NCBI RefSeq assembly: GCF_947568905.1
Contig: NC_079165.1
Span: forward strand, 10,664,001-10,728,000
From: Ostrea edulis
Lineage: Eukaryota
Direction of reading: 5' to 3'
Length of the DNA: 64,000 bases
Shown piece after piece: positions 3,001 through 37,100 of the stretch (positions are counted from its first letter, which is position 1; every line of letters starts with the position of its first letter). The notes beneath the pieces were generated by a model. It was given only the letters and a program-made list of their open reading frames with translations. It searched no databases and had not been told where the DNA came from. A program made the translations under genes and the position numbers.

Positions 3001-6000
3001 GAGTTGGCCGAGACTGAAATCACTGAGGAACTGAAACCTACTGAAACACCCAAAGAGACCGTGGGTGTAGAAATCACAGCTGCTGAAACAGTGGAAAAGA
3101 AACCCACTGTTGAAATCCCCGTCAAAGAACAAGCAGATGTACAAATCGCTGTTGCTGCTGAGGAGACGGTGAGGGAAGAAGTCTCCATTGAAGCAGTGTC
3201 TAAAGAGCAACCCGAAATTGAAATGGTTGTGGAAATCCCAGAGGAGAAACCCTCTGCGGAAGTCAAAGCAGAACTGGGTGTGGACGAAACCCCGGAAGAG
3301 GTGAAGGAGGAAGTCGAGGCGGAGTTTGCTCCCTCCGACAAGGCAGCAGAGGAAGTGGGTGTTGAAATCGCACCTGAGGAAGCTGCCGAGTTGGCCGAGA
3401 CCGAAATCACTGAGGAACTGAAACCTACTGAAACACCCAAAGAGACCGTGGGTGTAGAAATCACCTCTGCTGAAACAGTGGAGTCACTGGAAGAGAAACC
3501 CACTGTTGAAATCCCCGTCAAAGAACAAGCGGCTGTACAAATCGCTGTTGCTGCTGAGGAGACGGTGAGGGAAGAAGTCTCCATTGAAGCAGTGTCTAAA
3601 GAGCAACCCGAAATTGAAATGGTTGTGGAAATCCCAGAGGAGAAACCCTCTGCGGAAGTCAAAGCAGAACTGGGTGTGGACGAAACCCCGGAAGAGGTGA
3701 AGGAGGAAGTCGAGGCGGAGTTTGCTCCCTCCGACAAGGAAGCAGAGGAAGTGGGTGTTGAAATCGCACCTGAGGAAGCTGCCGAGTTGGCCGAGACCGA
3801 AATCACTGAGGAACTGAAACCTACTGAAACACCCAAAGAGACCGTGGGTGTAGAAATCACAGCTGCTGAAACAGTGGAAAAGAAACCCACTGTTGAAATC
3901 CCCGTCAAAGTACAAGCAGATGTACAAATCGCTGTTGCTGCTGAGGAGACGGTGAGGGAAGAAGTCTCCATTGAAGCAGTGTCTAAAGAGCAACCCGAAA
4001 TTGAAATGGTTGTGGAAATCCCTGAGGAGAAACCCTCTGCGGAAGTCAAAGCAGAACTGGGTGTGGACGAAACCCCGGAAGAGGTGAAGGAGGAAGTCGA
4101 GGCGGAGTTTGCTCCCTCCGACAAGGCAGCAGAGGAAGTGGGTGTTGAAATCGCACCTGAGGAAGCTGCCGAGTTGGCCGAGACCGAAATCACTGAGGAA
4201 CTGAAACCTACTGAAACACCCAAAGAGACCGTGGGTGTAGAAATCACCTCTGCTGAAACAGTGGAGTCACTGGAAGAGAAACCCACTGTTGAAATCCCCG
4301 TCAAAGAACAAGCGGCTGTACAAATCGCTGTTGCTGCTGAGGAGACGGTGAGGGAAGAAGTCTCCATTGAAGCAGTGTCTAAAGAGCAACCCGAAATTGA
4401 AATGGTTGTGGAAATCCCAGAGGAGAAACCCTCTGCGGAAGTCAAAGCAGAACTGGGTGTGGACGAAACCCCGGAAGAGGTGAAGGAGGAAGTCGAGGCG
4501 GAGTTTGCTCCCTCCGACAAGGAAGCAGAGGAAGTGGGTGTTGAAATCGCACCTGAGGAAGCTGCCGAGTTGGCCGAGACCGAAATCACTGAGGAACTGA
4601 AACCTACTGAAACACCCAAAGAGACCGTGGGTGTAGAAATCACAGCTGCTGAAACAGTGGAAAAGAAACCCACTGTTGAAATCCCCGTCAAAGAACAAGC
4701 AGATGTACAAATCGCTGTTGCTGCTGAGGAGACGGTGAGGGAAGAAGTCTCCATTGAAGCAGTGTCTAAAGAGCAACCCGAAATTGAAATGGTTGTGGAA
4801 ATCCCTGAGGAGAAACCCTCTGCGGAAGTCAAAGCAGAACTGGGTGTGGACGAAACCCCGGAAGAGGTGAAGGAGGAAGTCGAGGCGGAGTTTGCTCCCT
4901 CCGACAAGGCAGCAGAGGAAGTGGGTGTTGAAATCGCACCTGAGGAAGCTGCCGAGTTGGCCGAGACCGAAATCACTGAGGAACTGAAACCTACTGAAAC
5001 ACCCAAAGAGACCGTGGGTGTAGAAATCACAGCTGCTGAAACAGTGGAAAAGAAACCCACTGTTGAAATCCCCGTCAAAGAACAAGCAGATGTACAAATC
5101 GCTGTTGCTGCTGAGGAGACGGTGAGGGAAGAAGTCTACATTGAAGCAGTGTCTAAAGAGCAACCCGAAATTGAAATGGTTGTGGAAATCCCAGAGGAGA
5201 AACCCTCTGCGGAAGTCAAAGCAGAACTGGGTGTGGACGAAACCCCGGAAGAGGTGAAGGAGGAAGTCGAGGCGGAGTTTGCTCCCTCCGACAAGGCAGC
5301 AGAGGAAGTGGGTGTTGAAATCGCACCTGAGGAAGCTGCCGAGTTGGCCGAGACCGAAATCACTGAGGAACTGAAACCTACTGAAACACCCAAAGAGACC
5401 GTGGGTGTAGAAATCACCGCTGCTGAAACAGTGGAGTCACTGGAAGAAAAACCCACTGTTGAAATCCCCGTCAAAGAACAAGCGGCTGTACAAATCGCTG
5501 TTGCTGCTGAGGAGACGGTGAGGGAAGAAGTCTCCATTGAAGCAGTGTCTAAAGAGCAACCCGAAATTGAAATGGTTGTGAAAATCCCAGAGGAGAAACC
5601 CTCTGCGGAAGTCAAAGCAGAACTGGGTGTGGACGAAACCCCGGAAGAGGTGAAGGAGGAAGTCGAGGCGGAGTTTGCTCCCTCCGACAAGGCAGCAGAG
5701 GAAGTGGGTGTTGAAATCGCACCTGAGGAAGCTGCCGAGTTGGCCGAGACCGAAATCACTGAGGAACTGAAACCTACTGAAACACCCAAAGAGACCGTGG
5801 GTGTAGAAATCACCGCTGCTGAAACAGTGGAGTCACTGGAAGAAAAACTCACTGTTGAAATCCCCGTCAAAGAACAAGCGGCTGTACAAATCGCTGTTGC
5901 TGCTGAGGAGACGGTGAGTGAAGAAGTCTCCATTGAAGCAGTGTCTAAAGAGCAACCCGAAATTGAAATGGTTGTGGAAATCCCAGAGGAGAAACCCTCT

Positions 6001-8222
6001 GCGGAAGTCAAAGCAGAACTGGGTGTGGACGAAACCCCGGAAGAGGTGAAGGAGGAAGTCGAGGCGGAGTTTGCTCCCTCCGACAAGGCAGCAGAGGAAG
6101 TGGGTGTTGAAATCGCACCTGAGGAAGCTGCCGAGTTGGCCGAGACCGAAATCACTGAGGAACTGAAACCTACTGAAACACCCAAAGAGACCGTGGGTGT
6201 AGAAATCACCGCTGCTGAAACAGTGGAGTCAGTGGAAGAGAAACCCACTGTTGAAATCCCCGTCAAAGAACAAGCGGCTGTACAAATCGCTGTTGCTGCT
6301 GAGGAGACGGTGAGGGAAGAAGTCTCCATTGAAGCAGTGTCTAAAGAGCAACCCGAAATTGAAATGGTTGTGGAAATCCCAGAGGAGAAACCCTCTGCGG
6401 AAGTCAAAGCAGAACTGGGTGTGGACGAAACCCCGGAAGAGGTGAAGGAGGAAGTCGAGGCGGAGTTTGCTCCCTCCGACAAGGCAGCAGAGGAAGTGGG
6501 TGTTGAAATCGCACCTGAGGAAGCTGCCGAGTTGGCCGAGACCGAAATCACTGAGGAACTGAAACCTACTGAAACACCCAAAGAGACCGTGGGTGTAGAA
6601 ATCACCGCTGCTGAAACAGTGGAGTCACTGGAAGAAAAACTCACTGTTGAAATCCCCGTCAAAGAACAAGCGGCTGTACAAATCGCTGTTGCTGCTGAGG
6701 AAACGGTGAGGGAAGAAGTCTCCATTGAAGCAGTGTCTAAAGAGCAACCCGAAATTGAAATGGTTGTGGAAATCCCAGAGGAGAAACCCTCTGCGGAAGT
6801 CAAAGCAGAACTGGGTGTGGACGAAACCCCGGAAGAGGTGAAGGAGGAAGTCGAGGCGGAGTTTGCTCCCTCCGACAAGGCAGCAGAGGAAGTGGGTGTT
6901 GAAATCGCACCTGAGGAAGCTGCCGAGTTGGCCGAGACCAAAATCACTGAGGAACTGAAACCTACTGAAACACCCAAAGAGACCTTGGGTGTAGAAATCA
7001 CCTCTGCTGAAACAGTGGAGTCACTGGAAGAGAAACCCACTGTTGAAATCCCCGTCAAAGAACAAGCGGCTGTACAAATCGCAGTTGCTGCTGAGGAGAC
7101 GGTGAGGGAAGAAGTCTCCATTGAAGCAGTGTCTAAAGAGCAACCCGAAATTGAAATGGTTGTGGAAATCCCAGAGGAGAAACCCTCTGCGGAAGTCAAA
7201 GCAGAACTGGGTGTGGACGAAACCCCGGAAGAGGTGAAGGAGGAAGTCGAGGCGGAGTTTGCTCCCTCCGACAAGGCAGTAGAGGAAGTGGGTGTTGAAA
7301 TCGCACCTGAGGAAGCTGCCGAGTTGGCCGAGACCGAAATCACTGAGGAACTGAAACCTACTGAAACACCCAAAGAGACCGTGGGTGTAGAAATCACCGC
7401 TGCTGAAACAGTGGAGTCACTGGAAGAGAAACCCACTGTTGAAATCCCGACCAAAGATCAAGCGGCTGTACAAATCGCTGTTGCTGCTGAGGAGACGGTG
7501 AGGGAAGAAGTCTCCATTGAAGCAGTGTCTAAAGAGCAACCCGAAATTGAAATGGTTGTGGAAATCCCAGAGGAGAAACCCTCTGCGGAAGTCAAAGCAG
7601 AACTGGGTGTGGACGAAACCCCGGAAGAGGTGAAGGAGGAAGTCGAGGCGGAGTTTGCTCCCTCCGACAAGGCAGCAGAGGAAGTGGGTGTTGAAATCGC
7701 ACCTGAGGAAGCTGCCGAGTTGGCCGAGACCGAAATCACTGAGGAACTGAAACCTACTGAAACACCCAAAGAGACCGTGGGTGTAGAAATCACCGCTGCT
7801 GAAACAGTGGAGTCAGTGGAAGAAAAACCCACTGTTGAAATCCCCGTCAAAGAACAAGCGGCTGTACAAATCGCTGTTGCTGCTGAGGAGACGGTGAGGG
7901 AAGAAGTCTCCATTGAAGCAGTGTCTAAAGAGCAACCCGAAATTGAAATGGTTGTGGAAATCCCAGAGGAGAAACCCTCTGCGGAAGTCAAAGCAGAACT
8001 GGGTGTGGACAAAACCCCGGAAGAGGTGAAGGAGGAAGTCGAGGCGGAGTTTGCTCCCTCCGACAAGGCAGCAGAGGAAGTGGGTGTTGAAATCGCACCT
8101 GAGGAAGCTGCCGAGTTGGCCGAGACCGAAATCACTGAGGAACTGAAACCTACTGAAACACCCAAAGAGACCGTGGGTGTAGAAATCACCTCTGCTGAAA
8201 CAGTGGAGTCATTGGAAGAGAA
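1..8222 (+). repeat. Coding tandem array: 20 complete units plus a partial one; 15 units of 396 bp (132 aa) and 5 of 387 bp (129 aa)
   Basis: Unit starts (gttgctgctgagga) at 1, 397, 793, 1189, 1585, 1981, 2377, 2764, 3151, 3547, 3934, 4330, 4717, 5104, 5500, 5896, 6292, 6688, 7084, 7480, 7876. Confidence 0.97.
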
Positions 8223-8434
8223 ATTCACGATTGAAAATGAGGAAACAGTTGTGAAAATTGCACCTGATTATGAAATATTGAATGTCTTGTCTAAATCTGA
8301 CCTAAATAAATCAAATAGGTCACATGATATGAGTGTGGTTGATAGTACAGATCAAGACTTTGATTTCAATTTAAAAGAAAACTTAATATCATCCAAAAAA
8401 GATAGTGTAAATGTGTCAGAAACTATACATGAGG
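1..8434 (+). CDS. Exon 1 (5' end outside window): giant Glu/Val/Ala/Pro/Thr-rich PEVK-like repeat exon
   Basis: Frame 1 is open from base 1. Donor GAG G|GTAAGG after 8434; alternative same-phase donor GAA G|GTATCA after 8506. Confidence 0.85.
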
Positions 8435-10123
8435 GTAAGGATGAAATGCCTTTTGAAAAATCGAGGTCAAGCGCTCAAACTCTGGGCTCTGAGAAGGGAG
8501 AAGAAGGTATCAAGCTGCTGTTGCAGTGGCTATTGCTTTGTTTAGGCAGCTTGGAAACGCTGATGAATATTAAATATGTTGGTTATATTCTTCATATTTA
8601 GTTGAATGCCATTTTTATTCATTACACTTTTAACTGAGTGTCATTCTATTCATTGCATGGCTTTTTATTTTTCAGTTGTTACATATAGTACATAGATTTG
8701 AATTTTTATTTTTATATGAATGGTTTGACATTAATCAGGATTCTTTTAAAGAAATTTAGCTCCTGCAGGCAATATTGTTGTTCTTATTTACAAAATAATA
8801 ATTATTATAGTGTTCTTTGAACAGTTTGGATTTACTTTCATTTATTGATGAACTGTTTTCTATGCATGACATTGCATGTACTATCTTCTGGGTGTATACA
8901 TTTTTTCAAAATTTCAAAAATATTTCTGATTTTAGAAAAACATAAGAAATCATCTTTGTTAGTAAAATTAGTATTTTATGCCAGGAAGATTTTATGGTTT
9001 TGGTAATGTAGAATTTTATTTAGGAATCAAGAAAACATAAGCAGGGTTGGAATGGATCAAAGAGGTTTTGAAAATAGAGTAATAGGTTAAACATAAACAA
9101 CCACCAAAAGTTTACAGAAACTAGATACCCATAGAAACAGATTTTAGATTTCTTACTAGCTTTAGACTGGTTGTACAAATTCACTGCATTAGATTCTTAA
9201 GATAACAAAAGTCTAGAACAACTTGACTTTTATATACTCAAACTTGTTAAATTAGAAGAAATACTGTTTGAAAAGGTCATTTCATTCCTCCCTTTACTTG
9301 GCTTTATTATAAACTGTAGTCCTTTCTTAAAGACATAGTTACATTACAAAGTCTTTATCTTTTAAAATGTTGATAAACTGCTCAGTGGATTAAGGTCTTA
9401 GGTTAGCCATTTGTAGACCATGAGCCCGAGTCTAGCAGGGTTAGCTCAGTGAATTAAAGCATTAGGTTAGCAATCTGTGGACCATGAGCCCGAGTCTAGC
9501 AGGGCCTTTGATTTCTCTGTCTGTTTTTACACTGAAATTGCAGTGTTTCGTGAAGTAAGGTAGATTTGGATTTTACAATAACCATAAGGTTATTATATAC
9601 ATACCTTATAGTTTTTGTCGGTTATAATTTTCTTTGGTGTGTAATTCCTTCATACCATACATGTTTTAAAAGTAGGATTGACCACTCAGGGGCTCATTGT
9701 CCACATTTAATTATACCTATCGGAATAGGGTCAAGCAGTTTCATTACATTTTACTTTTTATTTTCATTCATTTTTCTATTGGTTTGTATAATATTTTGTA
9801 TATTTACTAACAATTGATACCTATGAACAGTTTTCAATCAAAAGTGAAAGATAGATATCATATTTATATTACCTTAGTTTTAGATTGCAGTGATGTAGAT
9901 AGCAGAGTTTAATTTATTTATATTAATGTATGCAAAGTTTATACTTATTCTGTTAGCAGAGAAAACTTTTTTTCTTGATTATTTTTTTGTAGTTTTGATT
10001 TCTTTTTATTAAAAGTAATATTTGATTTTCAATATTTTCAGAAAAACATGTTGAACACATTGATACTGAGTTTACCTTGAAAGATACATTATCTGAGAAA
10101 GAAAAACAATATGGTGTGTATAT

Positions 10124-10165
<42 letters not shown>

Positions 10166-13100
10166 GAGCCTGAAATTTTCGGTTTTGAATATGAGTGATC
10201 TTCTTTCACCTTGACCTTGTTTCTTGCAGAAGAGGAGAAGGAATCAACTTCAGATGAAGACAAAATACAGTCTCCAACTCCTTTTGGTGATTTCATTTTT
10301 ATCCAATGGAAATATTATTTTGCTCCTGATATATGAACAATTTTACTTACTTAGAATAATGTTGGGTTTTTTTTTCATTTTTTTTTAATATATTGGTTTC
10401 ATTTGTTTTTGAATAGTTGTGGAAGAAAAAGTAGAGAAACAAGCACCAGTGGTAATCTCCCCTTTGAAGAGCCTCCATTCCTCCGACGGAGAAGAGGCCC
10501 GTCTGGAATGTCAGATCACTGGATCACCCAAACCAACTGTCACCTGGTACAAAGAAGGCCAGGTCATCGTTAATTCTGAGGAGTTTAAAATATTCTATGA
10601 TGAAAACAATCTGTGTTCTCTCTTCATATCTGATGTCTATCCTGAGGATGCTGGGAAATATTCTTTGGTGGCTCAGAATGAACTTGGCACTGCTGAAACA
10701 ACAGCTGAGCTCTTTGTGGCAGGTATGCAACACTACAAAGATTTCTTGTTTCTGTTACATGAATCGGTCTATTTCCAAGAAAACTAAGTATTGAGATGCA
10801 TATTTAATTCTATAATGACATTATTGTTGGGGTAGCTCTCGAAAGTTATTTATTTCCGTTTCAGCACCAGATGAAATTTTGGAGGATGACTCTATTGCCC
10901 CAGCTTTCACACAAAAACCGAAATTCCAGACTGCCTCCATCAGTGAAACTGTGACCTTTGAGGCTACTGTTGTAGCTAACCCACAACCAGAAATTCGGTG
11001 GTCCAGGGAAAACACTGAATTAGTTCCAACTGACAAAGTGAAAGTGACAATCGATCAGAATGGCAACATCTATCACACCACGCTGACTCTGTCAGAGGTA
11101 GACGCAGAAGACGCGGGGACATTCAAAGTTCTGGCCACAAATGACCAGGGTGAAGCCAGCATCTCAGTCTCTCTGCTTGTCAAAAGTAAGTCTTCGTGAA
11201 AGAAAGATAGAAATAAAGAACATCTAAAATTCACATCCATGAGTGTGTCTAGCTACTAAATTTTTTTCTGTGTATTTCAGAACCAGAGGGACCACAAAGG
11301 GTTGACTTCAGAGACTCATTAACAACAGAAGTGTAAGCATCATTTAGTACTTTTATTTTTATCATATACCAAGAGGTTCCTTATGATAAAATTACAGAGT
11401 AACAAGAGAATATTTATGGAATTAATTCTTTTTATATTCAATACAGAGAATGAGTGTGATCCACAAGTCCATTAGTCAGAGTGCATGTGTCAGTGGACTT
11501 GTGACTTGTTTGATTCCTGGTTCTGTAGATTCCTTACTTTATATGAGTACTTAACAGCACAAAATTACCCGTAGACGTTAAATCGAAAGAACAAGAATTC
11601 ATCAGTGAACTGTTCATCAAGAGTTTTTACATGTAATTCAGCAATATAGAATTAAAAACTAGTCATTTTATTCCATGAATAGTGCTTCTCGCTATATTAT
11701 GCTACAATTAATTTCCCTCATATATTTAGGAATCTACAGTAACACATCTTTTTGCAATAAGTCCCATTTATATTTCAATTGTCAGTTTTCCAAGCATGAT
11801 TTTGAACCGTGTTGAAGATTTTAGAACAGATGCATCTTCTGTTTTGAAAAAATCAAAGTGTTGAATTTGAAATTTCTTTCTACCAGTACAGAATTGGATA
11901 TTAATTAGAATTTGCTATCTACTAATGATTATGAATTTCAACCATTGTTAACATGTTCTTTGCTTTTGACCTCTGCATGACCTTATTTCCTCGCTTACCC
12001 TGTACACAGGCAGACTAAGGTGGGCATTAAATATCAGGCAGAACAGATGGACTTCAGAACGCTATTAAAATCCACTTCAGTCAAGTCCAAGTAAGTTTTC
12101 GTCCCAAAAAAAAAATTTTTAAAAATAATATTTTTTATACTTAGTTTAATTAACCCCAGGAGATTAGGTACAGGTTTGCAACAAAAGCTGTTATCAAATT
12201 GTTTTATCTGGATATACATGGCATTACTTTATATTTGTGTAAAATGAAGCAGTAATATTTCTACTGGAAACCAACCAATGAAATGCATCCAAATGTCTCT
12301 TTCTCTTTTTGCATGGTGTTTGATAATGGCATGATCAGTTTGAGAGCATGTTTCACCATCTCACTAAGACTTCCACGCCTGATGTTTTTGTGTTTCTTCA
12401 TTTTAACAGGAAATTCTCACAGGAAGTTACAGAAGAAACTACCCAAGAAATTGTAGAAACTGAACAAGTGGACTTCCGGGAAGTGTTGAAAAAGGTCAGT
12501 GCTGAAAACAAAGTGTGGAAAGTGTTGCTGAATCGGACTTCTTCCAAAAATTGTTTTGCTGAAGCATCAATCCTATTTATACCCCCCGAATGAAGTTCTG
12601 GGGGGTATATAGGAATCACTCTGTCCGTCCGTCCGTCCGTCCGTCCGTCCGTCCGTCCGTCTGTCTGTCTCCAGATTCGTGTCCGGGCCATAACTTCTTT
12701 GTTCTTTGACATAGGCATACCATATTTGGCACACAGGTGGATCACCATGAGACGATGTGTCTGGTACCTTCATGACCTCTATATGACCTTACCCTTGACC
12801 TTAATGTCAAAATTAAATGTTTTTTTACAATGGATTCGTGTTTGGGCCATAACTTCTTTGTTCTTTGACATAGGCATACCATATTTGACACATGAGTGTA
12901 TCACCATGAGACGATATGTCATGTACCTTCATGACCTCCATATGACCTTGACCTCAAGGTCAAAATTAAACATTTTTACAATGGATTCATGTCAGGGCCA
13001 TAACTTCTTTGTTCTTTGACATAGGCATACCATATTTGATACATGAGTGTATCACCACGAGACAATGTGTCATGTACCTTCATGACCTCCATATGACCTT

Positions 13101-16100
13101 GACCTCAAGGTCAAAATTAAACGTTTTTACAATGGATTCGTGTCAGGGCCATGACTTCTTTATTCTTTGACATAGGCATACCATATTTGACACATGAGTG
13201 TATCACCATGAGACGATGTGTCAGGTACCTTCATTACCTCTATATGACCTTGAACTTTCACCTCAAGGTCAAAATTGATTATAGGGTTTTGACATAGTCA
13301 TACCATAAGACATGGATGTATCACCATGAGACTATGTGTCATGTACATTCATGACCTCTTTATGACCTTGACCTTTGATCTCAAGGTCAAAATTATAGGT
13401 TTATACCATGGATTTGTGTTCGCACTATATCTTCCATTTTCTTCTACAAAGGCATACTATATTTTTACACTCAGGAAAGAGGTAATTTATGCCTATTAAC
13501 AACACCCTTTGGGAGATTGGGGTAAGCAGGGGGCATTCTTATTGAGCATTGCTCACAGTACCTCTTGTTTGTTTTAAAAGTGCCTGTTCTTTTTGGTGCC
13601 AAAGTCTTCTGAAACTATCAGGTTAAAAGCATTCATTGTAAGTTATACTGATATGATGGCATAATTATTAGTGATCAATTATGCAAAGAAAAAGGGAAGA
13701 AAAATATATATTCATAATGAAAAATAGAAACATCTTTAAAATATCCTCAATCATTCCACAAATCACAGTTACATCAGTGGATCCAAGATATCACAAAAGG
13801 ATAATCAAATGAAGGTTCAGACAATGTTTTTATGTTATTGCAATGAAACTTGAAAGAAAAATGGTATGATAGAAAACCCATGGGTTGCCCCCCCCCCCCC
13901 CCCCCCCCCCCCCTCTCTCTTAAAATTGCTTAGCTGGTGGGTGCAGGCTAGGCCCACACTCCTGAATTTTGCATAGAATATAAGAAGAAAGAAATCGGTT
14001 CTGAATAACATGATTATGGGTTCCTGTAGATCTATTTCAGCATTAAATACATTGCAATATATGAATCTAACTCTTTCAGGAATAAAAATTTGAACAAACG
14101 TTACTTTATTTTCATTACATCAGTTTTACATCCTGTCCTCAAGCATCCTCAAACATCTACAAGTACATGTACATATATATAAAGCAACTTCTGATCTTGA
14201 CACTACTTGTATGAATTTAATCATTTATGTTTGACCGCAATCTAAATCTACATGAACTTATTGCAGACTGTCACTTCACCACAATTTGTTGTCATTATTG
14301 AGGACCTCAAAACTGAGGAAGGCTCTGAGGCAAAATTCATGGTCAAGGTTCGAGGTGAACCAACTCCAGAGGTCATGTGGTTCCATGAGAACGAACCAAT
14401 CAAAGACGATGACATCTACAAGATCATGGCTGGTGAGGAGGGTGAAGTAGTCCTGTATCTGCCTGAGGTGTTCATAGAGGATGCCGGTGTATACACGGTG
14501 AAAGCTGTCAATGAGGCCGGCGAAGTCTCCTGCTCAGCAATCCTCACAGTTCTTCAAGGTGAGTTGATTTACTCATTGAGTTTGTAGCATACCTGTAAAT
14601 CAGAAAGCACCAAAGAGATAGAAGTGGAGGAAACGCCTTCTGTATAATGGGTATTTCCTGCAGGTGGAAATTTTGTGACTTGATGATCCCAAGATATATT
14701 CTGCATTTCCAATTTCTGCAGTTGCAATATACCTATATATTCTTATAGGTATATTGCAAGTTTTATTTTTGTGGATTTTTCCTGTCTGCAAAATTCCACA
14801 CAAAAAATGGACAACCACAGAAAATACCCATAATGCAATATTTTGGAATGTTGTATATTCATGAACTTTCACCCTTAGGGAGGAAAGAAACATTATCTTG
14901 AAAGTTTAGAAATTGATGAAAAATATCTTAAGTATTTTAGAAATTGTTGAGGGAAGATTACCCATTCTTCATTTTGCAGAGGAGCTGGAAGATACAGAAG
15001 ACATCAAGGAGACACCTAAAGCAGAGTCAATCGAGGAAACACCTGCGAAACCGTTCACAATGCCAGATGCTGAACAACTGGACTTCAGAGCTGTACTCAA
15101 AAGCAAAGTGTAAGTTCTGTTTTATCATGCTTTATCTTTAGTTATAGTATTAACAAATCACCAAGTATCCTTATTATATTCAGAGTATTGACTATGATAC
15201 TACATTATTGTATTTTTGTAATGTTATCAAGAGATGTAAATTTAAGATTTTCTATCCTTATTTTAATATGAATCATTTGATTGTATAGCATACAGCATGC
15301 CTCCCATGTAAAAATGTCACTGTATGCTCTTCTTTGCATGCAATTTATAGCAAGACCAAATCGAACGAGAGCTTTGAAACTGAACAGCTGGATTTTAGAA
15401 GTGCGCTTAAAACTAAAGTGTAAGTCATACCCGGTGATGGAATCTGTGATGAATTTTCTGAATGATTGTCATTTTTTGAGTTTTATTGACCAGCTAAAGT
15501 TAAATATTTCATAAACAACTCTCTGTTCCTCATCAGGAAAACAAAGGCAAACCAAGAATTTGAGTCAAAACAACTCGACTTCCGAGGTGCTCTCAAATCA
15601 GAGCATGTGTAAGTTTCCTCGTTAAACTCTTAATCCTGTGGATTGTATTGGGATAAAACTGTCAGTTAATTTTTTTTTGTAAATCAATCTGTAACAGTTT
15701 TTGGCTTGTTTTGTATTCATACTCCCACAATTAACAACAGTAGATATACATATAAGACATATATTCCTCCTTTGACAGTGTGCCATTTAACAGATTTTGG
15801 ACTAACAACAGCCTTCAGTTTTGTACATATACTTATAGCATGCTTACATTATGTATATTCTAACAGACAAACCAAAGTGAACCAACAGTTTGCGCATGAA
15901 CAGTTGGACTTCCGAGATGCTATCAAAGCTCGCCATGTGTAAGTCAACCACTGTTCTGGTTAGGTGTACTGTTGTCATTTAATCTAGACGTTTAAAAAAG
16001 ACGAAAAATAATCCATGTTAAGAAGTGTGTAGGCAGGGGACAATTTTTTACTGAGTGTAACACTGACTTGGCTAGGAGGAGATAAATATTATCATCAAAG

Positions 16101-25100: not shown

Positions 25101-28100
25101 AGTCTACTGAATTTCTTGTAGCATAATTCATACTGACATTCCTGATTTTGAGCAAATTTATACATATTTCTTGTTCCATTAATGACATTCCACAATTTTT
25201 AGCAAATATTGAATTTATTATATTTACAGAGTTTACATTTTTCACCTTTTTGGACTTTTTCCAACATAGATAATTATGTAGTCAATATCTGTTCAAAACA
25301 AATGAATACAGATTTTGTCTTAGTATGTTGCATGAATGAGTGTGTTTTGTGAGGCATTAAACCTGCATTAGGATTTTTATCGGAATTCAAAAGTACAAAA
25401 ATTAAATTTTCTGAAGTCAGTTTATGAGAAAACATTGTTTTATAGATTTGTTATCAGTGAACTAGTTTGTCTACCATGAAGGAATAACAAGTCTTATTAA
25501 CTACCTCTACTGTTACACAGAAATGTTTGATGTCTTTTTGAGTTTGCATGAAAGAAATGTCATCTACTATGCAGATATTGACAAATAAATAATTTTTAAA
25601 TATTGCTGACGTGCATGTTAATTCTTTTCTGGTCAGACTTGGAGTCTGGGGCACCTTGCAGTTGTGAGAAATATGAGGCCATCAGCTTACACTGTTTCAC
25701 TGCAGTATGGAAAATAATGACAATAGAAAATTTAATCTTTAAACTAAATAAATTATGTTCCTCTCTTATTTAATTGAAGCAATATCACATTGCACCTTTG
25801 TTTGGTTGCAAATGGGTTTATTTTGCTCTGATGGCAAGTTGCATGACAAATGGGCAAGCCTTCTTGTGTATGAATGCAAATTTTTCATTGAAAACAGTTA
25901 TTATTTTCCATTTGCTTTGATGTCAAACATCTTTTGTCAAATGTGCAATATTTTGGACAGTGTGTCCCACCCCTGAGGTTTCCCTGGTGATGTGCTTCAC
26001 CTGAGATACCTTGATGACACTCAAGATTAATGTTCACCTTATCAGAGCCTGGGTCACCCCACAATTCTTTTCTTCTACAGGCAGTCTATACAATGTAAAT
26101 TGAAATTTAAGTAAACTTTTTCAATTATTGTTAGATCATTATCCCCATCTGAGAGTGAATATTGTTCACAACTGTGTGACATAGCACGGAATTGACTCTG
26201 CACACCTGAGTGATATTTTATTATGATTAACCACCAAAGCCTAGGCCATAAGGTGTATTTATGTACACAATCTGCCTTTTAATGTAGTTGGGGATATTTA
26301 GATTTTGTTGCCTGGATATGAATCATCAAAGGGGTCCCCCCCATCTAAAAATATTTTGAGGCTCTAGAGGAATGGGTCTATTTAATTGTTCCTTGAGGCT
26401 CTAGAGGAGGGGGATTCAGGCTTGTATTTCGTCTGCATAATATCATGTTGAACAGGAAAATTTCTTCAGGATATGCTGATAGGCATAAACTCAGTGGAAT
26501 GCTGATAAATCATATCAATTGAAGCATGTTTAGGAATGCATACAAGGTATTTTATAAAAATTGTAGATGTCACCTTTCAGAGCCTCAATGAAGTCAAAAG
26601 TTGTATGTTCAGTCAAGAGATTAAGACAATGGATAAATGGAGATATATCTTTATGTCTTTATAAATATCAGGCCCGTCAGGACTATAATCATTGACTCTT
26701 GAAAAAAAAAACAATGCTTGGACGCCCAGGGATTTAGATGATATCACAACACAATGCCAAAACAGCTGAGCAGATTAGCCAGGGATAAAGAAATGAAAAG
26801 TTTTTGAAGAGAGGCGGAGAACCCTAACATTATGAATGATTTGACAATGTATGAGAACATGTACTGTACAAACAATGATATTTATTCTAGAGTGTATAGG
26901 CATTTCAGAGATTAAGACTTCCTAAACAGGAAAAAAAAAAGATCAAAGATTATCAGATAAGGAAAGAATTTAACGAATACACACAGAGCGATTTGTTGTA
27001 AGTCTATTTAATTGACATATCAATTAATGAATGGGTTATAAGGTTATGTTTATGTTGTATTTAACAATGATACATTGTTATTGAGGTTTTATATTAAGCT
27101 TTCCAACTATGTGGCTATGAGGCTCTAGATGGTAAAATGCATGTCTCTATGTAATACTGCATATACACTGATGTGGTTTGGGAGTATAATTCATTTTTGC
27201 TCAATTTTCTTGAACAGATTTATAAACAAGTTTTGTTTTGTTTTTTACAATATTGTAAACACATCTTTTCTCTCAATATTTCAGCACACACTTGTTCTAG
27301 GCAGTTTTTTTTTTTATTTCTAGATGAAATGGTATATTACACTTGTCTTGCATGGAAGTTTACACTTTTACTTGTAAAAACAAGACTAATGCATTAATCT
27401 TTGGTTTGACTGGTTGTAGAAACAAGTCTTACAGAGTTATCTACCTTTTCCTGTGTTGGTGTTTTGTATACAAACTAGATTTTCACTAAAGTTTTTTTTT
27501 TAATACATGAGTTTTTGATAAATGCATGAAAATATAAAGTTTAACTTTTATGAGCATGTATAATTCTGATATTTTCAGCAAATATTTTGTTTTCATTTTT
27601 TGGTGTGTGATATATCTGATATACAAATACAGGTATAACTATAATGGGGAAAATTGAATTTAAAGAAAGTGCATAAAATGTATGAGATGTTTTCTGGACT
27701 AAAAAAGATCTATGAATTTTATATCTAATGTAGAAAAAAAGAGTTATCTTTTCAAAGATTAGTTTGATCTTAAATAATGAGAAATGCAATAACAAAAAAG
27801 ATCAAATAATTTTTATAAATGATTTTTTAGTACCACCAAGCATCCTCAGCTTCCCTGAGAAGATCACGATACTAGAGGGAGAGGAGGTGTCCATCGTTTG
27901 TAAGATAGAGGGAGTGCCCTCCCCCAAACTCTCCTGGACTGTCGAGGACAAGGAGCTCATCCCAGATCAACACCACCTGTTGGAGGTCATCGATGACACA
28001 GTGGTCCTCAAAATCCCACAATGCACTGCTGATGATGAGGCCATCTATGTTCTGAAGGTCGAAAACCCAGCAGGCAGCGATACAGTGGCCATTCCTGTCA

Positions 28101-31100
28101 AAGTTGAGGGTAGGTTTTTACTCCATCTTAAGGAGGAATACCACACAAGAGAAATTTGATATGGATGAAAAGTGGGGGATATGTACAAAATATTTCAAAT
28201 TTAATTTTTTAGTTGAAAATTACACTTATTGCAGAAAGTAATCTGAAAAAAATTTAAAACTTTTTCTGGACTTGAACCCGCAATCTACCGATCAGCAGTC
28301 GACACATTAACTGACTGAGCTACTCAGCTAGACAAAAGGAATATATAAATATTGCTGATATTCATATCTTTATTCATGTTTTAAAAGGACATCAGTCATA
28401 TGAGGATGTAGTATATTCCTCCTTGAGATTTACATTCTATCACCAGTGAATTAGATTATGGATTACTGCTGAGCTTCAACACTTGATCAAGTGTTTGATT
28501 GAAAACATTAATATGTATATATACACTGTACATGTATTGAAATAAGAAAAAGAATTATTTTGATTTATGTATATTTACTTGTAAAATTTCAGATGAATTT
28601 AGCTTGTTTTCCTACAGTCTAGTGTGTAGTAAGTTATGATGAGTTCAGAATTTCATTGATTAACTTAATCATTGTAATCAGAGTGTTCTCTGACCTGTTC
28701 ATAATCCAGAAAATAATTTCACTTTTGCTCTAGCTGTCATTGGGAAGCCCTTTACCTTGATAGAGTGCACCTGCTAACAGTACTTAGAGAATTTCCTTCA
28801 TGCACAATTATGCACATCATTAGCATATAATAAATCATGGTTCTAAAGGTTAATTAGATGAATTGTGTGTAATCTGACAGGTCTGTGTACAGGCAGATAT
28901 TGTCTATTTTTAAAAAGTGTTGGGAAATTTAAATACTGAAATAGAATCTCATTATCTTTTACGATTTAGTGTTCTGAAGAGACTTTCTTGTCGTAGTCTT
29001 TGTTTCAACTTCCAGCATGACAAGCTTAAGGTCATCAAAGACAGTTACTTCTGTGGGCAAAACATTTAATTTTTTTTTCTAAAAGTGAATTACTGAACTA
29101 TGCAAATGGGGACAAATGGGACTTTTCATGAAAAAGAGGCTTTGAAAATTATTAAGATTTATTGTGTTGTGTTTAAAATCAGGAGGGCGGTTTTAGATTA
29201 GACAAACCTCTTCAGGATTATCAGCTGCAGTTGAAAAGATAATAGAAGATTGCATATTGTTTCTTATGTCATGTGGGTACTTGAAAACTTTAAAATCAAT
29301 ACCTGCTAGGAAAACTTGGAGATGCCTGCTGTGAGCAGAGCTTTAGACCCCAGAAACTTAAACTGCGGATTATTTACAATTCCAAGCACATTTAGTACGA
29401 GGAATCGAAAGAATGATTAGCAGAGTATAGTGATGGCGAAAGAAAATTGACAGTTGTCTGTTTAAAATGATTGTAAACAATAAAATTGTTTTTATTGAGA
29501 TTTTGCCAAAGAAAGGTTTAAGAAGTTACAACCCTCCCAAACCAATTGGGTTATCTTAGGAGATTTACAGGACCTGTGTTCACAAGGAGGCTGTACTTTA
29601 ATGTTTGTTCAATATTACTTGGGTATAAGCTCACTTGACTTCAGTTATTTGAAGGACTTACCAATTGCATCACGTAATTTATTCAGATGAGGAATTTTAA
29701 ACCTATTGTTATCAGGTGTTAAATCTGTAGCAGAATTTTTAAATCAATTTTTTCTTCGATTTATATTCCTTGTGTGATGGGAGAAGATTTCAAAGGCCTT
29801 CTTGATAGCAGTGTTGACTTTGAATCCTTTTTCTTGTTTATATTAGTCGTGGCGATCAGGATTTAATCAGTGGTCAGAGATCGATGATGACCGCATTTTT
29901 TGAACATTACCTGGTACACTGTCCTGTTAGTATACTGTGCGTCTTCACTTACGTGATACAGGAATGATATACTCAGGCTTATGACAGTTACCCCATTAAC
30001 CTTTATTGCTGTGATGATGCACATGGATATAAAGTGAATAAAACACGGGTCAGAAAATTGGTGGAGGATCCCATCCTCCTTAAAGATTCAGAAAGTGAAA
30101 CTAGTTCAATGATCTGAGAAGTGTTGCAGTCTGATTTGAGTTTAATACACTGGAATTAAAAATGACAATTTTAGGGAAAGCTTATATATTGATTATCAGC
30201 AGTTTAAGGATTGAGGATTTAGTTCTGGAATATGTTAATTATGGTAAGGTATTTCTTGAAATAAATAAATACTGACCAGTTATCTGTTCTAGAAGGAGAA
30301 AACAAATGGAAAAACATGTACTTTACCATTTTACACTTTTTTTTTGTTATGATTATTTTTATCTGAAAAGTAGCCATACATGTATGTTCTACCATTCCCA
30401 GGAATCTTAATTATCTTCTCTAAAAATAAACATAAACACCACCCCTTATCATCCAAAAAATTATCAAATTTCAAAAAACATGGGCCATTAAATGGTTTTG
30501 TTATGTATATATACAGGGTGTGAGATGCCAGTCTGTATAGGTGTATTTCATGTTTCATCGCCTATCAGCGTGGCGTCTGATCAGTGCAAATTAGTGAGAA
30601 CTCTCCTATATGTTTCTTCTTTAATATCCTCTCCTCACATCAGCAAGTTCATTAACTGCAGATACTGCTTCCCATCAACCTCTGTAATTAAATTCACCAC
30701 CAGGGGGATTTACCCAAATCTCAGTGAAAGTTTACCACTGGAGAGGTACCTAAGTGTATCTAGACATGGGCTGTTTAAAGCAATAATATGAAACGAAGTT
30801 TTAAAAACACAATTTGCTTGGTTGTTATGCATATTTTAATACATTCGAATCGGTAGCTCACAAGTTTTGTCATGTAGGTAATTTGATAAGATTCAGCTGC
30901 TTTTTTTCACCGGAATTGGAAAAATATGCATTAAAATGTCTCAGTCAACAGCACATTAACGGTTTTATAAACATTTGGAAATATTTATTGCATATTAAGT
31001 CCTTGGAACATAGATTTTTTATGATTTGGATGTACACAGTGTTTTGTCCAGTGTTTTGTCCGAGCATTCAAGTGTTTGTTAATAATCATGACCATGAACC

Positions 31101-34100
31101 AAATAGTGATAATAATAGATACCATAATTTGTTGCTTTTGAATGCTATGCCTACTCTGAGCTTTCTAAACTCCACATAATTACAAACACACCTTACTATT
31201 AAATACAACCAGTATATACCACAGCATATAGAATATTCAAGAAGACAACATCATATTTCAATGTAGTATTTATTTGGATTTATTTATTTTGTTGGTATGA
31301 ACTAAGACAAAAAATTGAAGCCACTTTGCTCATTCATATTTAATGCTACCTTGCAAAAAGTTTGATAGATATAAAAGGTCAAGGTCAACAAAGAGGAAAT
31401 TAAAGAGGTACACATGAATCACAAGGGGGGGGGGGGGGGGGGCACTTTATGACCTTAGTTTATTTACATGTGCATTGCAAGGAAGTGAATTATTTTGAAT
31501 TACACAAACTAATTAGTATTTGAATGACCTTTTTCAGGAACTGAGAAAGTTGTTAAGACGAAGGATACAGCTATCATCACACCGGAAGGAAGAGCTCCAG
31601 AATTCGTGCTTCGCATCAAGACAGAAAAGGTAACTACTCGAGCATGCAGGGCCAGGTGATTAGTACGCAGAAGTCAAGGGAAATAACTCAGTTTACGATA
31701 CTCGAAGAATTTATTCCCTACAAGTTCTTTACAGGACACTGTCACAATTTTTAATTATATTAAGATCAGTAATTTTCATGGGGATTGAACTTTTGTTAAT
31801 TCTATGGGATAGACACATATCCATAGATTCAAAACTTCAACAGAGCATGGAACTTCCATAAACAACATTAGTAGTGAACTGTAAATATCAAGCTCCTACA
31901 GAGAGTGGAACTTCCATAAACAACATTAGTAGTGAACTGTAAATATCAAGCTCCTACAGACATGCTATTTTTTCCCAAACCACAGAAATATTACACTTTG
32001 AAAATAAGTGATTCTACAGGAATAGAAAATTTCATCAACAACAAATTCTTACTGTCTCTAGGCACCTAATCCTACCTCTGGAGTTTCCAGGGGTCCATGT
32101 TTGCCCTAATCTCTGTTTTGTATTCTTTATAGGTTTTATAAGATTGGTCACTGTTCATTATCTTCATTTTTTTCATCTTATTCACCTCAGGTTGAGGAGG
32201 GTGAACTCGCTGATTTCACATGTGAGGTGGTAGGTACCCCCAAACCCCAGCTCAACTGGATCTACAATGGCCGCCAGCTGGTGGATGATGGAAGATATGT
32301 CATCTTTGAGGATGACGACGTGAACCATTTACAGATATACGACATCAAACCGGAGGACGCAGGAGAATACAGGGTACAGGCAGAGAATGAACACGGCCAA
32401 GTCAGCTGTTCAGCCGAACTACAGGTGGAAGGTATGAACACAAAACAAGACCATCAGTTCTAAGTGTGTGATACAGTATGTGTTATTTTCTCTGTTTGAA
32501 TGTTTTATCTTCATGCATTTAATTCTGAATCATTATAAAGTATGATCAATGGAAGATATTCAAAGACACTCTTTTCAGCGTTTCCTTATTTAGATGTCTA
32601 TTGATGTGATAGATTTTGTTCAGTCTTTTCATTGTAATATGTTATATGATTGTGTGATGTGAGAAAAATTACGATTTTATTTAGCTCTGCCGGTCCAAGA
32701 AGAAGTGACAGAACTAGAGGCTCCTAAGTTTGTTGTGGAGATTCAGACGTTAGAGTCCAGTATTCACGACAAAGCCAAATTCACTTGTAAAGCTACTGGC
32801 AAACCAACTCCAGGAATCCTCTGGTACAAAAACGACAAGGAAATCTCCAAAACTGACAACAGATTCACTATTCAGTTCGAGGACAAGGGAGAGTCTTCCT
32901 TGCTTATAGTAGATGTCCTACCCGAACATGACGGTACATACACAGCCGAAGCTAAAAACCCGGCGGGGACAGCCAGATGTAAAGCGGAGCTCTTCGTGGA
33001 AGGTAAGGGGCACTTGTTGTTTCTAATGGTGTGCTTCAAACAATGATTTCTTCCGTTTCAAGAATCTGAAGGATATGTTGCACATTACAGAACCAAAAGA
33101 AGACAAACCGTCCATTCCTGAATTCATCAAAGTTCCAGAACAGATTGTTGCAAGGGAACGTGACCTTGCACAATTCATTGTCAAGGTCATTGGTACACCT
33201 AAGCCCACAGGTCAGTGACTTCTGAATTTCTGTGTGTTTGGAATACCCCAGTTTTCTGGCACTTTTGTGCATTTTAAAATGTTTACTGTAATCATGCTAT
33301 AAACCATTGAGTTATTTAAAAAATTCTTCAAAATTGACACTTTTTCAATCTCCTTACAATCAAGTTGCATTGCATAGAAAAAGCAGATAAAGATATGAAT
33401 AGAGTAAGTGAGAAGAGACTAGGTTAGCACAACAAATGTTCTAATTTTCTTACAAAAACACCAGAATTGTTGGATAGATTATAAATGTTATTTTAAGGAA
33501 CTTTCTGAATTGAGGAGTACCTTATTCTAGGTCCAGGGATTGTTTATAGGTGCACTTAATGGGATGAATATGGCATATTTTTTTATCAGTTCTCTGGAAG
33601 AAGGACAACATGGTTTTAGAAGATCTTGAACTTTACCACTTTGAGAAATACGAGGACACATACTGTTTTGAGATTAAGACTGTAGAGACAGAAGATGCTG
33701 GAGTTTACACCTGTGTGGCCAAAAACACAGAAGGGGAGGCAACCTGTGACATTCCACTCGTAGTCAATGGTCAGTACACATCTGTACACAGGACTGTCAA
33801 TTCTTAGTCAGAAGTACAGAAATGTATTGTAATATAACGGTAAAAACACTGCACCAAGTACACATCTGTACACAGGACTGTCAATTCATAGTCAGAAGTA
33901 CGACGGTAAAAATACTACACCAAGAAACAAAACAGCTTTCAATAGGACCTTACAAGAAATTGTGTTGATAATTCTTATAATATGGGCAGTATCTTATAAA
34001 GTTGACTTTTTGACAACCTGAGTGTGATTGTAATGTGATTGACCGTTGTCCATTTACAGAGATCAGAAGAGACCAGAGACTCTCAGAATCTCCGCTAGTC

Positions 34101-37100
34101 CTACGACACCAAGACTCCTCACAGGCACCAGAGTTCACCGAGGTCTTTGACACCTGTGTAAGTGTATTTTTTCACTCAAATACTAATAAGGGATATACCA
34201 CTGCTATGATTATGAAATTTTCACAAGCACTGCAACATTGTGAACTCTGGATGAAAATTCTAGTTTCACCATCTGATAGACTTTGGTGGAAACCACGTGG
34301 ATACTTCATGTTTTCATCAGGTTTCCAGCATATATTTTCTTTGTAAAATATTTTATTTTAACAATATTCCATATTGGAAGATTACTATGCCCTGGATTCT
34401 GAAGTGTCTCCTTGTAGGAAGACCTAGAAAGTAGGAAGATTCCTGAAAACACATGTAGTTTCTCAAAATCATACCCTAGTTTGTACTTTCTCTTTGAGAT
34501 AATTAGAGAGCAGCTGTTTTTAATTGTCTAAATCTGAACTTTTGCAGACTGTCATGGAGGATAAGCCGTTGTCCTTGATGGCAAAGGTGACCGGAACTCC
34601 TCGTCCAGAGGTCATGTGGTACCGTAACAACAAGGAGCTGGTGACCACGCCCAATGTCAAGCTGTCTTACGAGGATGAAACATGCTCGCTCATCATCAAG
34701 AAAATGACAATGGATTTGGAGGGAGAGTACAAATGTGTGGCTAAAAACCCTGCTGGTTCCTCCGATATCGCTGCCAAGGTCATTGTGGAAGGTAAGCACA
34801 TCAATTTTATATCCTGTGTTGCCAGTTATGAATCACTGTTAATTTTCCCATTATTATCAGCTGTATCTGAAATCTTTTTTCATGTAAATCACTGTACAAA
34901 AAGCACTTGAAGCATGATTTCAACAAATATCACTCTTTATAATATGTATAAAAAAAAAAAAAAAAAAAATTCTATTAATATTGAATGTATCTGATGTTCC
35001 ATGTGCTTTCTAACAATAGAATGTCTGTACTAGTCCAATATTTGTCCATTTCAAATCTTGAAGACAATGTTTTGTGTGCATATTGAAGAAAATTGCATCT
35101 TGAATTTTAGAGCAAATGAATGATTGCCGTATGTTGTACCTCGTTCATTTTTCTTCTTAACTAACTGTGTGAATTCTCGAGATCTGTGGAATTGCGATGC
35201 TATTTGTAAGGCAGAAAACTCTCGTTTGAAAGAGACCGATTTCGTCTCCTCTATCAGTCACTATTTTATCCTCCGTTTCAGATGAGTACACCTGGTTCTG
35301 TTATTTCACCTCTGATAGTAAGTCACACACAAGTTATCTGGAGAAAAAAAAATACTTATCAAAAACATCTACCTGGAAGAGTAACAGAGGCCATTTATAA
35401 AATATCTAAATTTAATGCTTTTATCATATACAAACTGATACATTTTTACCTGTATTTATGAAAATATAAGTTTATATGAAATACTTCATAACCACATTTT
35501 CTGGTTACAGAGAAACCGTTTTGGTATTTTTCACCTGTGCATCGTAAGTTGTTGAAGGTTCAAATGATTAATATGCAAAAATGCAAAAAGAAAAATTAAT
35601 GAATTATATAAAAGAATCTCTGGAGATTTTCTGGGAAGATTAATATATTAAAGTTTGGTGTCCACTCTTTCTCTCTGCTTTAACACAGAGTGGCTTATTG
35701 CCTTCAGTATGCATTCTGTGATATTCCATATTTAGCCGTAAAATTTATCTCTGCTTTTTTTGTTATCAGAAGTATCGATGTATCGTTTAATCAAATATAA
35801 AGTGATATGATTCATTATTCCCATAGTTTTAATACAGAGAAGTAGACAAACTAAATGTCTTTGAGAGCTAAACAATTACAAACATATTTCTCCAGAATAT
35901 ACCTGTGTATTAGTTGTGTATTCAGAATACCTTACAACCTCACTGTATTGACTGAGAACAAAATTGCATGCTTATTTTCTTCAGGCTGTGATTGTTGAAA
36001 TGTACAATGTGTATTTCTTGTGCATGCAAAAATGATCTTTTCTAAGGGCAGTAACTCTTGCAGCATAACACATTTGTAAGGCATATTGGTTTTCTATTGG
36101 CCACACATATATTTATGTTGTGATTTGCATGAGTGATTTTAGTATTTAGAACAGGTGATGTTTAACAGGTGGATAGAGGGCTGGTAACAGCATGGGATGC
36201 AAATTTTGTAGATACCTACCCATAGAATACACAAATGTGTGCATATCTATTCAGCACAATATTTTTTTCCATTTTGTATTATACCGGTTTTTTTTAGATA
36301 CCAATGATTTATGTTGTAGTGCAGATTATTTTATTTGCTTTAAAATGTTCATCAGAAAGTATCTCATTGATCATTCATTACATCATTTTGTATCTATGCC
36401 AGTTGAAATTAAGATTTTCATGCAAATGCATGTATCTACATTAATATCGGTTGGTAGAGGCTAATTACTGTTGTGAATGGGTTTTCCAGGAAGGGCGGAG
36501 ACTCCCATCTTCTCCCGCAAACTCAACAACAGAGAATGCAAGGAGGGCCGACCAATCAAATTTGAGTGTGCTGCTAAAGGCATTCCTCAACCTGAAGTCA
36601 CATGGTAAGTCAATCAAAATTACATCACCCAATCAGAATTGATATAGGGTGGTCAGGGACACACTTTGAGTTTCTTGTGAAGGTGATACTTGTACAAGGT
36701 AATTTAGGGCATCCAGAAGGGGGCGGGACCATCAAGTCTCTTAATTGTAGAAACAATTATACTTAATTTCGAAAACATTAGTTGTAGCACAAAGTGAATT
36801 GGAGTAACCATTACGATTTAGTGGAAGGATATTCAGTATCTAAGTCCTTGAATTCTTAATCTACAAATTAATTGAGAACAGCGTATTCTGTAAATATCTT
36901 CTATAAAGATGTTTTTTAAAATTACTTTGTTTCTAATGTTGGTTTGTCCTTTCCCTCAGGTACTTGAACAACCAGCCGGTGGAGGCGGGCCTACGTTTCC
37001 ACACCGATGTTCGTAAGAGTTACGCTGACGTGGTATACAGCCTCAGCATTGACAACTCCGAGGTGGAGGATGCTGGTGAAGTCAAAGCTATCGCTCACAA

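Follow-up and report, generated by a model that had tools for sequence, protein, structure and literature searches.

One proven and two probable aromatic-rich cassette microexons in Ig-Ig linkers of an oyster titin-like gene

We analyzed a stretch of 64,000 nucleotides (nt) from Ostrea edulis (NC_079165.1, positions 10,664,001 to 10,728,000 of the forward strand), which is called the window here and in which all positions are counted from its first letter. On its plus strand, the window covers a portion of a giant muscle gene of the titin/connectin type. A repeat exon of 2866 codons (1-8598) is followed by tandem I-set Ig exons with phase-1 introns, and these are followed by Ig/Fn3 repeats. 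Two long phase-1 introns of this gene harbor three very short exons that encode aromatic-rich peptides, denoted microexons 1, 2, and 3 (c1, c2, and c3 in pairwise comparisons). We consider it probable that all three are conserved, frame-preserving cassette microexons, which would lengthen the linkers between Ig domains. Inclusion as well as skipping was observed in spliced RNA for microexon 2, and all three are conserved between oyster genera.

Three microexons in two long introns

The portion of the gene within the window is the tandem-Ig, I-band-like region of a titin/connectin-like gene. The exons that flank the microexons encode I-set Ig domains and are separated by phase-1 introns; the domain PF07679 was found on P0001-P0010, which are orthologous genomic open reading frames (ORFs) for the Ig preceding microexon 2 (P0001-P0004) and the Ig preceding microexon 1 (P0005-P0010). 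The host introns comprise 3428 nt (microexon 1) and 1698 nt (microexons 2 and 3), whereas the neighboring introns comprise 88-561 nt, in agreement with a first-pass annotation of this DNA that had described the host introns as unusually long. Microexon 1 is alone in its intron, and microexons 2 and 3 are arranged in tandem, 193 nt apart.

The coordinates, lengths, acceptors, GTAAGT donors, and open phase-1 frames that the first-pass annotation had given for the three candidates were each verified in the sequence (Table 1). As the flanking exons end and start in phase 1, the peptides are also read as it had claimed. Upon inclusion, the Gly at the junction is changed to Asp or Glu, 10-11 residues are added, and Arg stands at the end. 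The resulting inserts of 11-12 residues have an acidic start (DE or E) and an aromatic core (FxxF.Y, YxWFxYF, or FWYF). Each contains 3-5 aromatic residues, and F, W, and Y account for 12 of the 35 residues of all three. With an insert, the Ig-Ig linker changes from about 5 hydrophilic residues to about 17 residues of hydrophobic character. The exon lengths of 36, 36, and 33 nt are multiples of three, are identical in all orthologues, and are below the 51-nt limit for microexons, but above a stricter limit of 27-30 nt.

A region of 264 kb (the window, 120 kb upstream, and 80 kb downstream) was scanned for sites consisting of AG, 18-51 nt, and GTAAGT in which phase 1 was open, a pyrimidine tract was present, and three or more aromatic residues were encoded. 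Only these three sites were retrieved. When the donors were relaxed to GT[AG]AG on the gene strand, no further convincing member was found in the 264 kb. GTAAGT itself is found 29 times on the plus strand and 9 times on the minus strand of the window (138 versus 45 times in the 264 kb), and this threefold excess on the gene strand is explained by strong consensus donors throughout the gene.

Table 1. Microexons, flanking exons, and conserved intronic elements in the window
Feature	Position	Strand	Description
Microexon 1	28593..28628	+	36 nt; phase 1-1; tttcag|ATGA...; GTAAGT donor; peptide DEFSLFSYSLVC
Microexon 2	35282..35317	+	36 nt; phase 1-1; tttcag|ATGA...; GTAAGT donor; peptide DEYTWFCYFTSD; proven cassette exon
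Microexon 3	35511..35543	+	33 nt; phase 1-1; ttacag|AGAAACC...; GTAAGT donor; peptide EKPFWYFSPVH
Ig (I-set) exon preceding microexon 1	27831..28109	+	phase 1 at both ends; ttttag|TA..., GAG G|gtaggt; orthologous ORFs P0005-P0010 with PF07679
Exon following microexon 1, linker and beginning of next Ig	31538..31629	+	cag|GA; X1 and X2 contigs join 31629|32191
98-nt exon, linker and first strand of Ig preceding microexon 2	34060..34157	+	X1/X2 joints 33768>34059 (cut +1) and 34157>34548; 84% identity to L006
Ig (I-set) exon preceding microexons 2 and 3	34548..34791	+	GAA G|gtaagc; orthologous ORFs P0001-P0004 with PF07679
Exon following microexons 2 and 3, first half of next Ig	36490..36607	+	cag|GA
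Conserved non-coding block	29184..29761	.	about 560 nt downstream of microexon 1; 578 nt; single copy; 76% identity to Crassostrea contigs L017 and L019
(U)GCAUG elements	35965..36194	+	TGCATG at 35965, 36021, and 36126; GCATG at 36190; conserved in three oyster lineages

Inclusion and skipping of microexon 2 in spliced RNA

Contigs of the RNA-like runs X1 and X2, which stem from a sister species (organism A) that is about 97% identical in exons (1-7% letter differences per exon), were compared with the window over 30700-36650. The X1 contig (4477 nt) revealed nine GT..AG joints, including seven ordinary ones through 31538-34791. Microexon 2 was included in this contig by the GT..AG joints 34789>35280 (cut +2, equivalent to 34791|35282) and 35317>36490, and the 38 contig letters between the records 1792 and 1831 represent the 36-nt microexon plus an ambiguous AG. 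In the X2 contig (1983 nt), microexon 2 was skipped and 34789>36488 was joined directly (equivalent to 34791|36490). These contigs prove that microexon 2 is a genuine cassette exon, which uses canonical splice sites and is included in some mature mRNAs and skipped in others.

A contig of a further RNA run, X3 (34770-34922; 100% identical and probably from the window's own species), extends 131 nt beyond the 34791 donor. The extension reflects either pre-mRNA that had not been spliced, a retained intron, or carried-over DNA.

Conservation between oyster genera

The read-through ORF that surrounds the Ig preceding microexon 2 served as the query of a word search, which led to orthologous contigs (L001-L016), and three oyster lineages were aligned with MAFFT over 34548-36607. 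Microexon 2 (together with about 40 nt after it) and microexon 3 had identities of 82-90%, which equal or exceed those of the flanking Ig exons, compared with 30-50% over most of the intron. All three microexons are islands of identity (0.82-0.90), compared with values of 0.0-0.5 in the flanking intron. The length of microexon 3 and its ttacag/gtaagt splice sites were retained in L001-L013 and in L014. When the Ig preceding microexon 1 was used in the same way, orthologues of microexon 1, again 36 nt long and with tttcag/gtaagt, were present in the contigs L017, L042, L019, L043, L044, and L018, which represent at least three lineages, and their flanks could not be aligned. Contig L019 is derived from run SRR21185637 of a Crassostrea angulata x C. 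gigas hybrid (PMC10546077), and therefore the comparison spans oyster genera. Across these genera, all three microexons have retained the same length, both splice sites, and the frame, with orthologues in at least three or four lineages.

Coding constraint and alternative explanations

Random single-base changes would be synonymous in 17-19% of cases, and the binomial P values given here are derived from rough event counts. For microexon 2, the 2-3 differences were all synonymous (3/3) and the peptide was invariant in three oyster lineages (P ~0.005). For microexon 3, the synonymous changes amounted to 5/5 in comparison with lineage 1 and 6/7 in comparison with lineage 2 (with one F>I), in phase 1 only, or about 9 of 10 events (P ~3e-6). 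These changes include one of its last base from C to A, which retains the Arg only when microexon 3 is spliced to the GA of the next exon. For microexon 1, the ratios of synonymous to non-synonymous changes were 4:1, 3:2, and 2:2, so that about 5 of 9 events were synonymous (P ~0.02); its constraint is weaker because of several non-synonymous changes. The other two frames contained stops or almost exclusively non-synonymous changes, and phase 1 alone was free of stops. The substitution pattern of the microexons is thus of the coding type. Microexon 2 is certainly a real exon, microexon 3 is likely to be one, and microexon 1 is probably one.

Several observations weigh against this reading. In the X1 and X2 contigs, the conserved splice sites of microexons 1 and 3 were seen in skipped form only. 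Microexon 3 was absent from both contigs, and microexon 1 was skipped in X1, in which a loose end before 31537 matched the last 30 letters of the exon 27831-28109 (28109|31538). Word searches with the Ig-region ORFs yielded read-through ORFs from genomic sequence but nothing derived from transcripts, and none of the matches supported microexon 1 or 3. The RNA evidence consists of contigs from two or three RNA-like runs, which drop minor isoforms, are uninformative about tissue, and come from the sister species rather than from the window's own species. As contigs cannot reveal minor isoforms, the skipping of microexons 1 and 3 is no evidence of non-use. At the sequence level, the non-synonymous changes of microexon 1 include Y>N, C>W, L>P, and S>I, and other conserved non-coding islands are present in the same introns, so that conservation by itself is no proof of coding. 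Lastly, the first-pass annotation had proposed the conservation of length, frame, and splice sites in other bivalves as a check. All of these were kept in other oysters for all three microexons, but L016, a contig of a more distant bivalve with 55% protein identity, had no counterpart of microexons 2 and 3. The orthologous intron, within the stretch 1176-1842 of L016, comprises only 367 nt. The feature is therefore lineage-restricted. In the same contig, the next Ig domain is encoded without the interruption by an intron that follows ...VTW in oysters. The claim of the first-pass annotation that these are real frame-preserving microexons is thus borne out by RNA for microexon 2 and by conservation across genera for all three, while RNA inclusion of microexons 1 and 3 was not seen in the contigs.

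The most serious alternative is that only microexon 2 is coding, while microexons 1 and 3 would be splicing elements that are conserved but non-coding, i.e., decoy or pseudo-exons or recursive-like sites, which serve the processing of long introns or the regulation of neighboring exons and never enter mature mRNA. This would agree with the skipping of microexons 1 and 3 in the only contigs that cross them, with the many other conserved non-coding islands in the host introns, and with the combination of very small exon size and strong consensus splice sites, which is typical of decoys. However, decoys and recursive sites would show no coding constraint, whereas the changes in both microexons cluster at phase-1 synonymous sites (about 9/10 and 5/9 for c3 and c1, respectively, versus about 19% expected). 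The last-base change of microexon 3 preserves Arg only if it is joined to the GA of the next exon, the exact length and the open frame are retained in every lineage, and the remaining two frames contain stops or only non-synonymous changes. Moreover, the other conserved islands lack a 3-base periodicity. We therefore regard the decoy explanation as improbable.

Chance combinations of AG and GTAAGT in AT-rich introns have a negligible probability. AT-rich sequence readily yields open frames rich in Phe and Tyr, and the DNA likeness between the candidates is at the level of chance (see below), but this explanation is refuted for microexon 2 by its presence in spliced RNA. It is very unlikely for microexons 1 and 3, as all three are islands of conservation with both splice sites kept across genera in introns that are otherwise unalignable, and was rejected on these grounds. 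An origin from exonized fragments of a transposable element or another repeat, which a high-copy repeat nearby (about 31894-32291) might suggest, is hardly credible, because the regions of microexon 1 and of microexons 2 and 3 each have a single match in the 895-Mb genome and lie at orthologous positions in other genera.

Relationship among the three microexons

The first-pass annotation had regarded the three candidates as a family, and had argued that the likeness between them speaks against chance splice signals. We compared their DNA, including 100-nt flanks, by local alignments against shuffled sequences. For c1 and c2, only TTTCAGATGA was common, and the score of 20 was close to the shuffle mean of 19 (p = 0.37). 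The alignment of c1 and c3 was no better than those of shuffles, and that of c2 and c3 was marginal (p ~0.04, with the selected GTAAGT counted in). The segment tttcacct, which c2 and c3 share, is a coincidence, as the synonymous sites on which it lies are not the same in Crassostrea. We therefore rejected homology of the three candidates in their DNA, and at this level the argument from likeness is weak.

The peptides of c1 and c2 yielded a different picture. Their first eight residues both follow the pattern D-E-[FY]-[ST]-hydrophobic-F-[SC]-Y, and their BLOSUM62 score of 25 was tied for the third to fourth rank among 83,290 8-mers of the window, with the choice of eight residues being post hoc. 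Over the full 12 residues the score was 17, and 118 12-mers had scores of at least 15. In addition, the best paralogue in the window of the Ig preceding c1 is the Ig preceding c2 (35.8% identity); this fits an old block duplication and is not proof of one. The peptide likeness of c1 and c2 is suggestive, and the family claim is only partly supported. We regard common descent of the microexons as possible though the less favored account, and a shared functional constraint, i.e., the acidic start and the aromatic core, as somewhat more likely.

Conserved intronic elements

Islands at 35998-36070 and 36105-36138, downstream of microexons 2 and 3, are conserved, and the TGCATG and GCATG elements, which sit in conserved intronic islands, are located 420-650 nt downstream of microexon 3. 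UGCAUG downstream of an exon is the classic arrangement of an Rbfox enhancer. In the window, TGCATG occurs 69 times, compared with 41.8 expected. Together, these motifs suggest that microexons 2 and 3 are candidates for Rbfox-type control. For microexon 1, no TGCATG was found on the plus strand in 28629-31537, which contains only a GCATG at 29015. None of the three acceptors is preceded by a TGC within 25 nt, and thus the UGC motif within about 15-20 nt of the acceptor that is characteristic of SRRM4/eMIC-dependent exons is absent.

A large conserved block is located at 29184-29761 in the intron of microexon 1. Its mismatches are distributed evenly over the three positions (43/49/47 by position mod 3), and it contains non-triplet indels and stops. 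It is therefore non-coding and was rejected as a hidden microexon. As this block has no 3-base periodicity, conservation in these introns is not coding by default. An Rfam search over 27500-37000 did not match any family; the block is a candidate for a region that controls splicing, for an enhancer, or for an RNA that has escaped annotation. The same intron contains additional short islands of conserved, non-coding sequence at 28820-28842, 28925-28950, 30012-30040, and 30203-30232 (within the ranges 28820-28950 and 30010-30235). Between microexon 3 and the TGCATG sites, three conserved islands are located at 35673-35714, 35842-35872, and 35880-35927, none of which reads as a coding exon.

An RNA stem between TCTGGAGAA, after the donor of microexon 2, and TTCTCCAGA, downstream of microexon 3, would loop out microexon 3. 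Its energy of -23 to -25 kcal/mol did not differ from that of shuffled controls, the best stem partner differs in L014, and the stem was rejected.

Two more sites were considered as hidden microexons and rejected. The segment 37830-37928 is an ordinary half-Ig exon. In the segment 42620-42694, the changes relative to Crassostrea are non-synonymous whichever frame is read, and a good donor is lacking after it. It is a conserved island of 58-75 nt, about 180 nt upstream of the exon at 42870, follows ccacag, reads MVWWFDRG in one frame, and is probably regulatory. No other hidden coding island was found in a comparison with L006 over 34-46 kb.

Other features of the region

The 98-nt exon at 34060-34157, which the first-pass annotation had not named, was confirmed by the spliced contigs of both X1 and X2. 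Just upstream of the exon 32191-32431, the repeat at about 31894-32291 has a high copy number, as the depth of the DNA run X4 was 4,000-14,000 compared with about 12 elsewhere. Loose ends of X4 are numerous at 32058-32176, within this repeat region. When the Ig preceding microexon 2 was compared with protein representatives, its orthologue was not among the 150 matches listed (ranked by summed Ig score), of which the best had 47% identity.

Possible functions

Microexons 1 and 3 may be used in tissues or stages beyond those that were sampled. Inclusion would be governed by conserved intronic elements nearby, including the three UGCAUG elements of the Rbfox type downstream of microexons 2 and 3. 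One possibility is that the inserts are short linear motifs, switched by splicing, for docking to a partner or to the Ig domain next to them; alternatively, they could be adjustable linkers that alter the spacing and the mechanics of the Ig chain. There are precedents for both possibilities: in PTPdelta, the splice inserts meA and meB, which lie in Ig-Ig linkers, serve as a recognition element and as an adjustable linker, respectively (PMC4423211), and titin Ig domains change in mechanical stability when an added or artificial interdomain linker is present (PMC9456048).

Our analysis favors a splice-switched docking or clamp motif, with a tuning of linker geometry in second place. Hydrophobic inserts are expected to be costly, i.e., aggregation-prone, unless they are bound to something. 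The strict amino-acid conservation of such peptides points to a specific contact, either with a partner or as an intramolecular clamp. The first-pass annotation had considered docking motifs as well as membrane or partner anchors; docking is plausible, but an insert of 12 residues is too short for a membrane span. A more far-reaching proposal is that the microexons are an oyster-lineage family of acidic-aromatic "sticky linkers", in which a hydrophobic, strand-forming motif would dock a filament partner or clamp the neighboring Ig domain, and that muscle types (striated, smooth or catch, and cardiac) would set the stiffness or anchoring of the titin-like filament by microexon choice under Rbfox-type control. 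We offer this proposal tentatively and consider it doubtful.

Giant titin-like proteins determine passive tension and serve as a scaffold for the sarcomere, and the known isoform diversity of the titin type arises from the skipping of whole Ig or PEVK exons. To our knowledge, tuning by aromatic linker microexons is not known for vertebrate titin. If it were true for the oyster protein, such microexons would represent a finer and different tuning device for titin-like proteins, and bivalve muscle, with its striated and catch types, would be a natural test system. Such exons are easily missed by annotation and by standard RNA-seq mapping; in this case, reading the bare DNA letters found real exons.

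Comparison with known systems

Conserved, alternatively used microexons in linkers between domains are a known kind of feature, and no report on microexons in titin-like Ig linkers was found in the literature searched. Animals reportedly possess conserved, alternatively spliced cassette microexons that belong to neuronal and muscle programs. Like these, the oyster exons are very short, are multiples of three, have strong splice sites, and are conserved together with flanking intron sequence; they encode insertions at a surface or linker, and inclusion and skipping forms exist (microexon 2). In contrast to the strict class of 3-27 nt, the oyster exons have 33-36 nt, and in contrast to SRRM4/eMIC-dependent exons they lack a UGC motif directly upstream of the acceptor. 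They also differ from known animal microexons in their host, a molluscan giant muscle filament protein, and in the unusually aromatic and hydrophobic character of their peptides.

The muscle-specific domain MSD1 of NCAM is encoded by microexons of 15, 48, 42, and 3 nt. As in the oyster gene, a cluster of tiny, muscle-regulated exons lies between modules of an Ig-superfamily protein and forms a hinge. However, MSD1 is rich in Ser, Thr, and Pro, is O-glycosylated, and is located between Fn3 domains of a cell-surface protein.

The I-band of vertebrate titin shares with the oyster gene symmetric phase 1-1 exons in a tandem-Ig spring, which can be skipped without a frame shift, and the length of linkers affects Ig mechanics (PMC9456048). 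Unlike in the oyster gene, the length of vertebrate titin is tuned via whole-domain or PEVK exons, and aromatic microexons in its Ig-Ig linkers were not found in the literature searched.

The meB insert of PTPdelta is hydrophilic, has four residues (ELRE), and belongs to an extracellular receptor of synapses, whereas the oyster inserts are aromatic-rich, have 11-12 residues, and belong to an intracellular protein of the sarcomere, and there is no homology between the two. Nevertheless, the mini-exon peptides meA and meB of PTPdelta and the LAR-type receptor protein tyrosine phosphatases (LAR-RPTP) are the best-documented model for both roles proposed here, namely recognition and the adjustment of a linker between Ig domains (PMC4423211).

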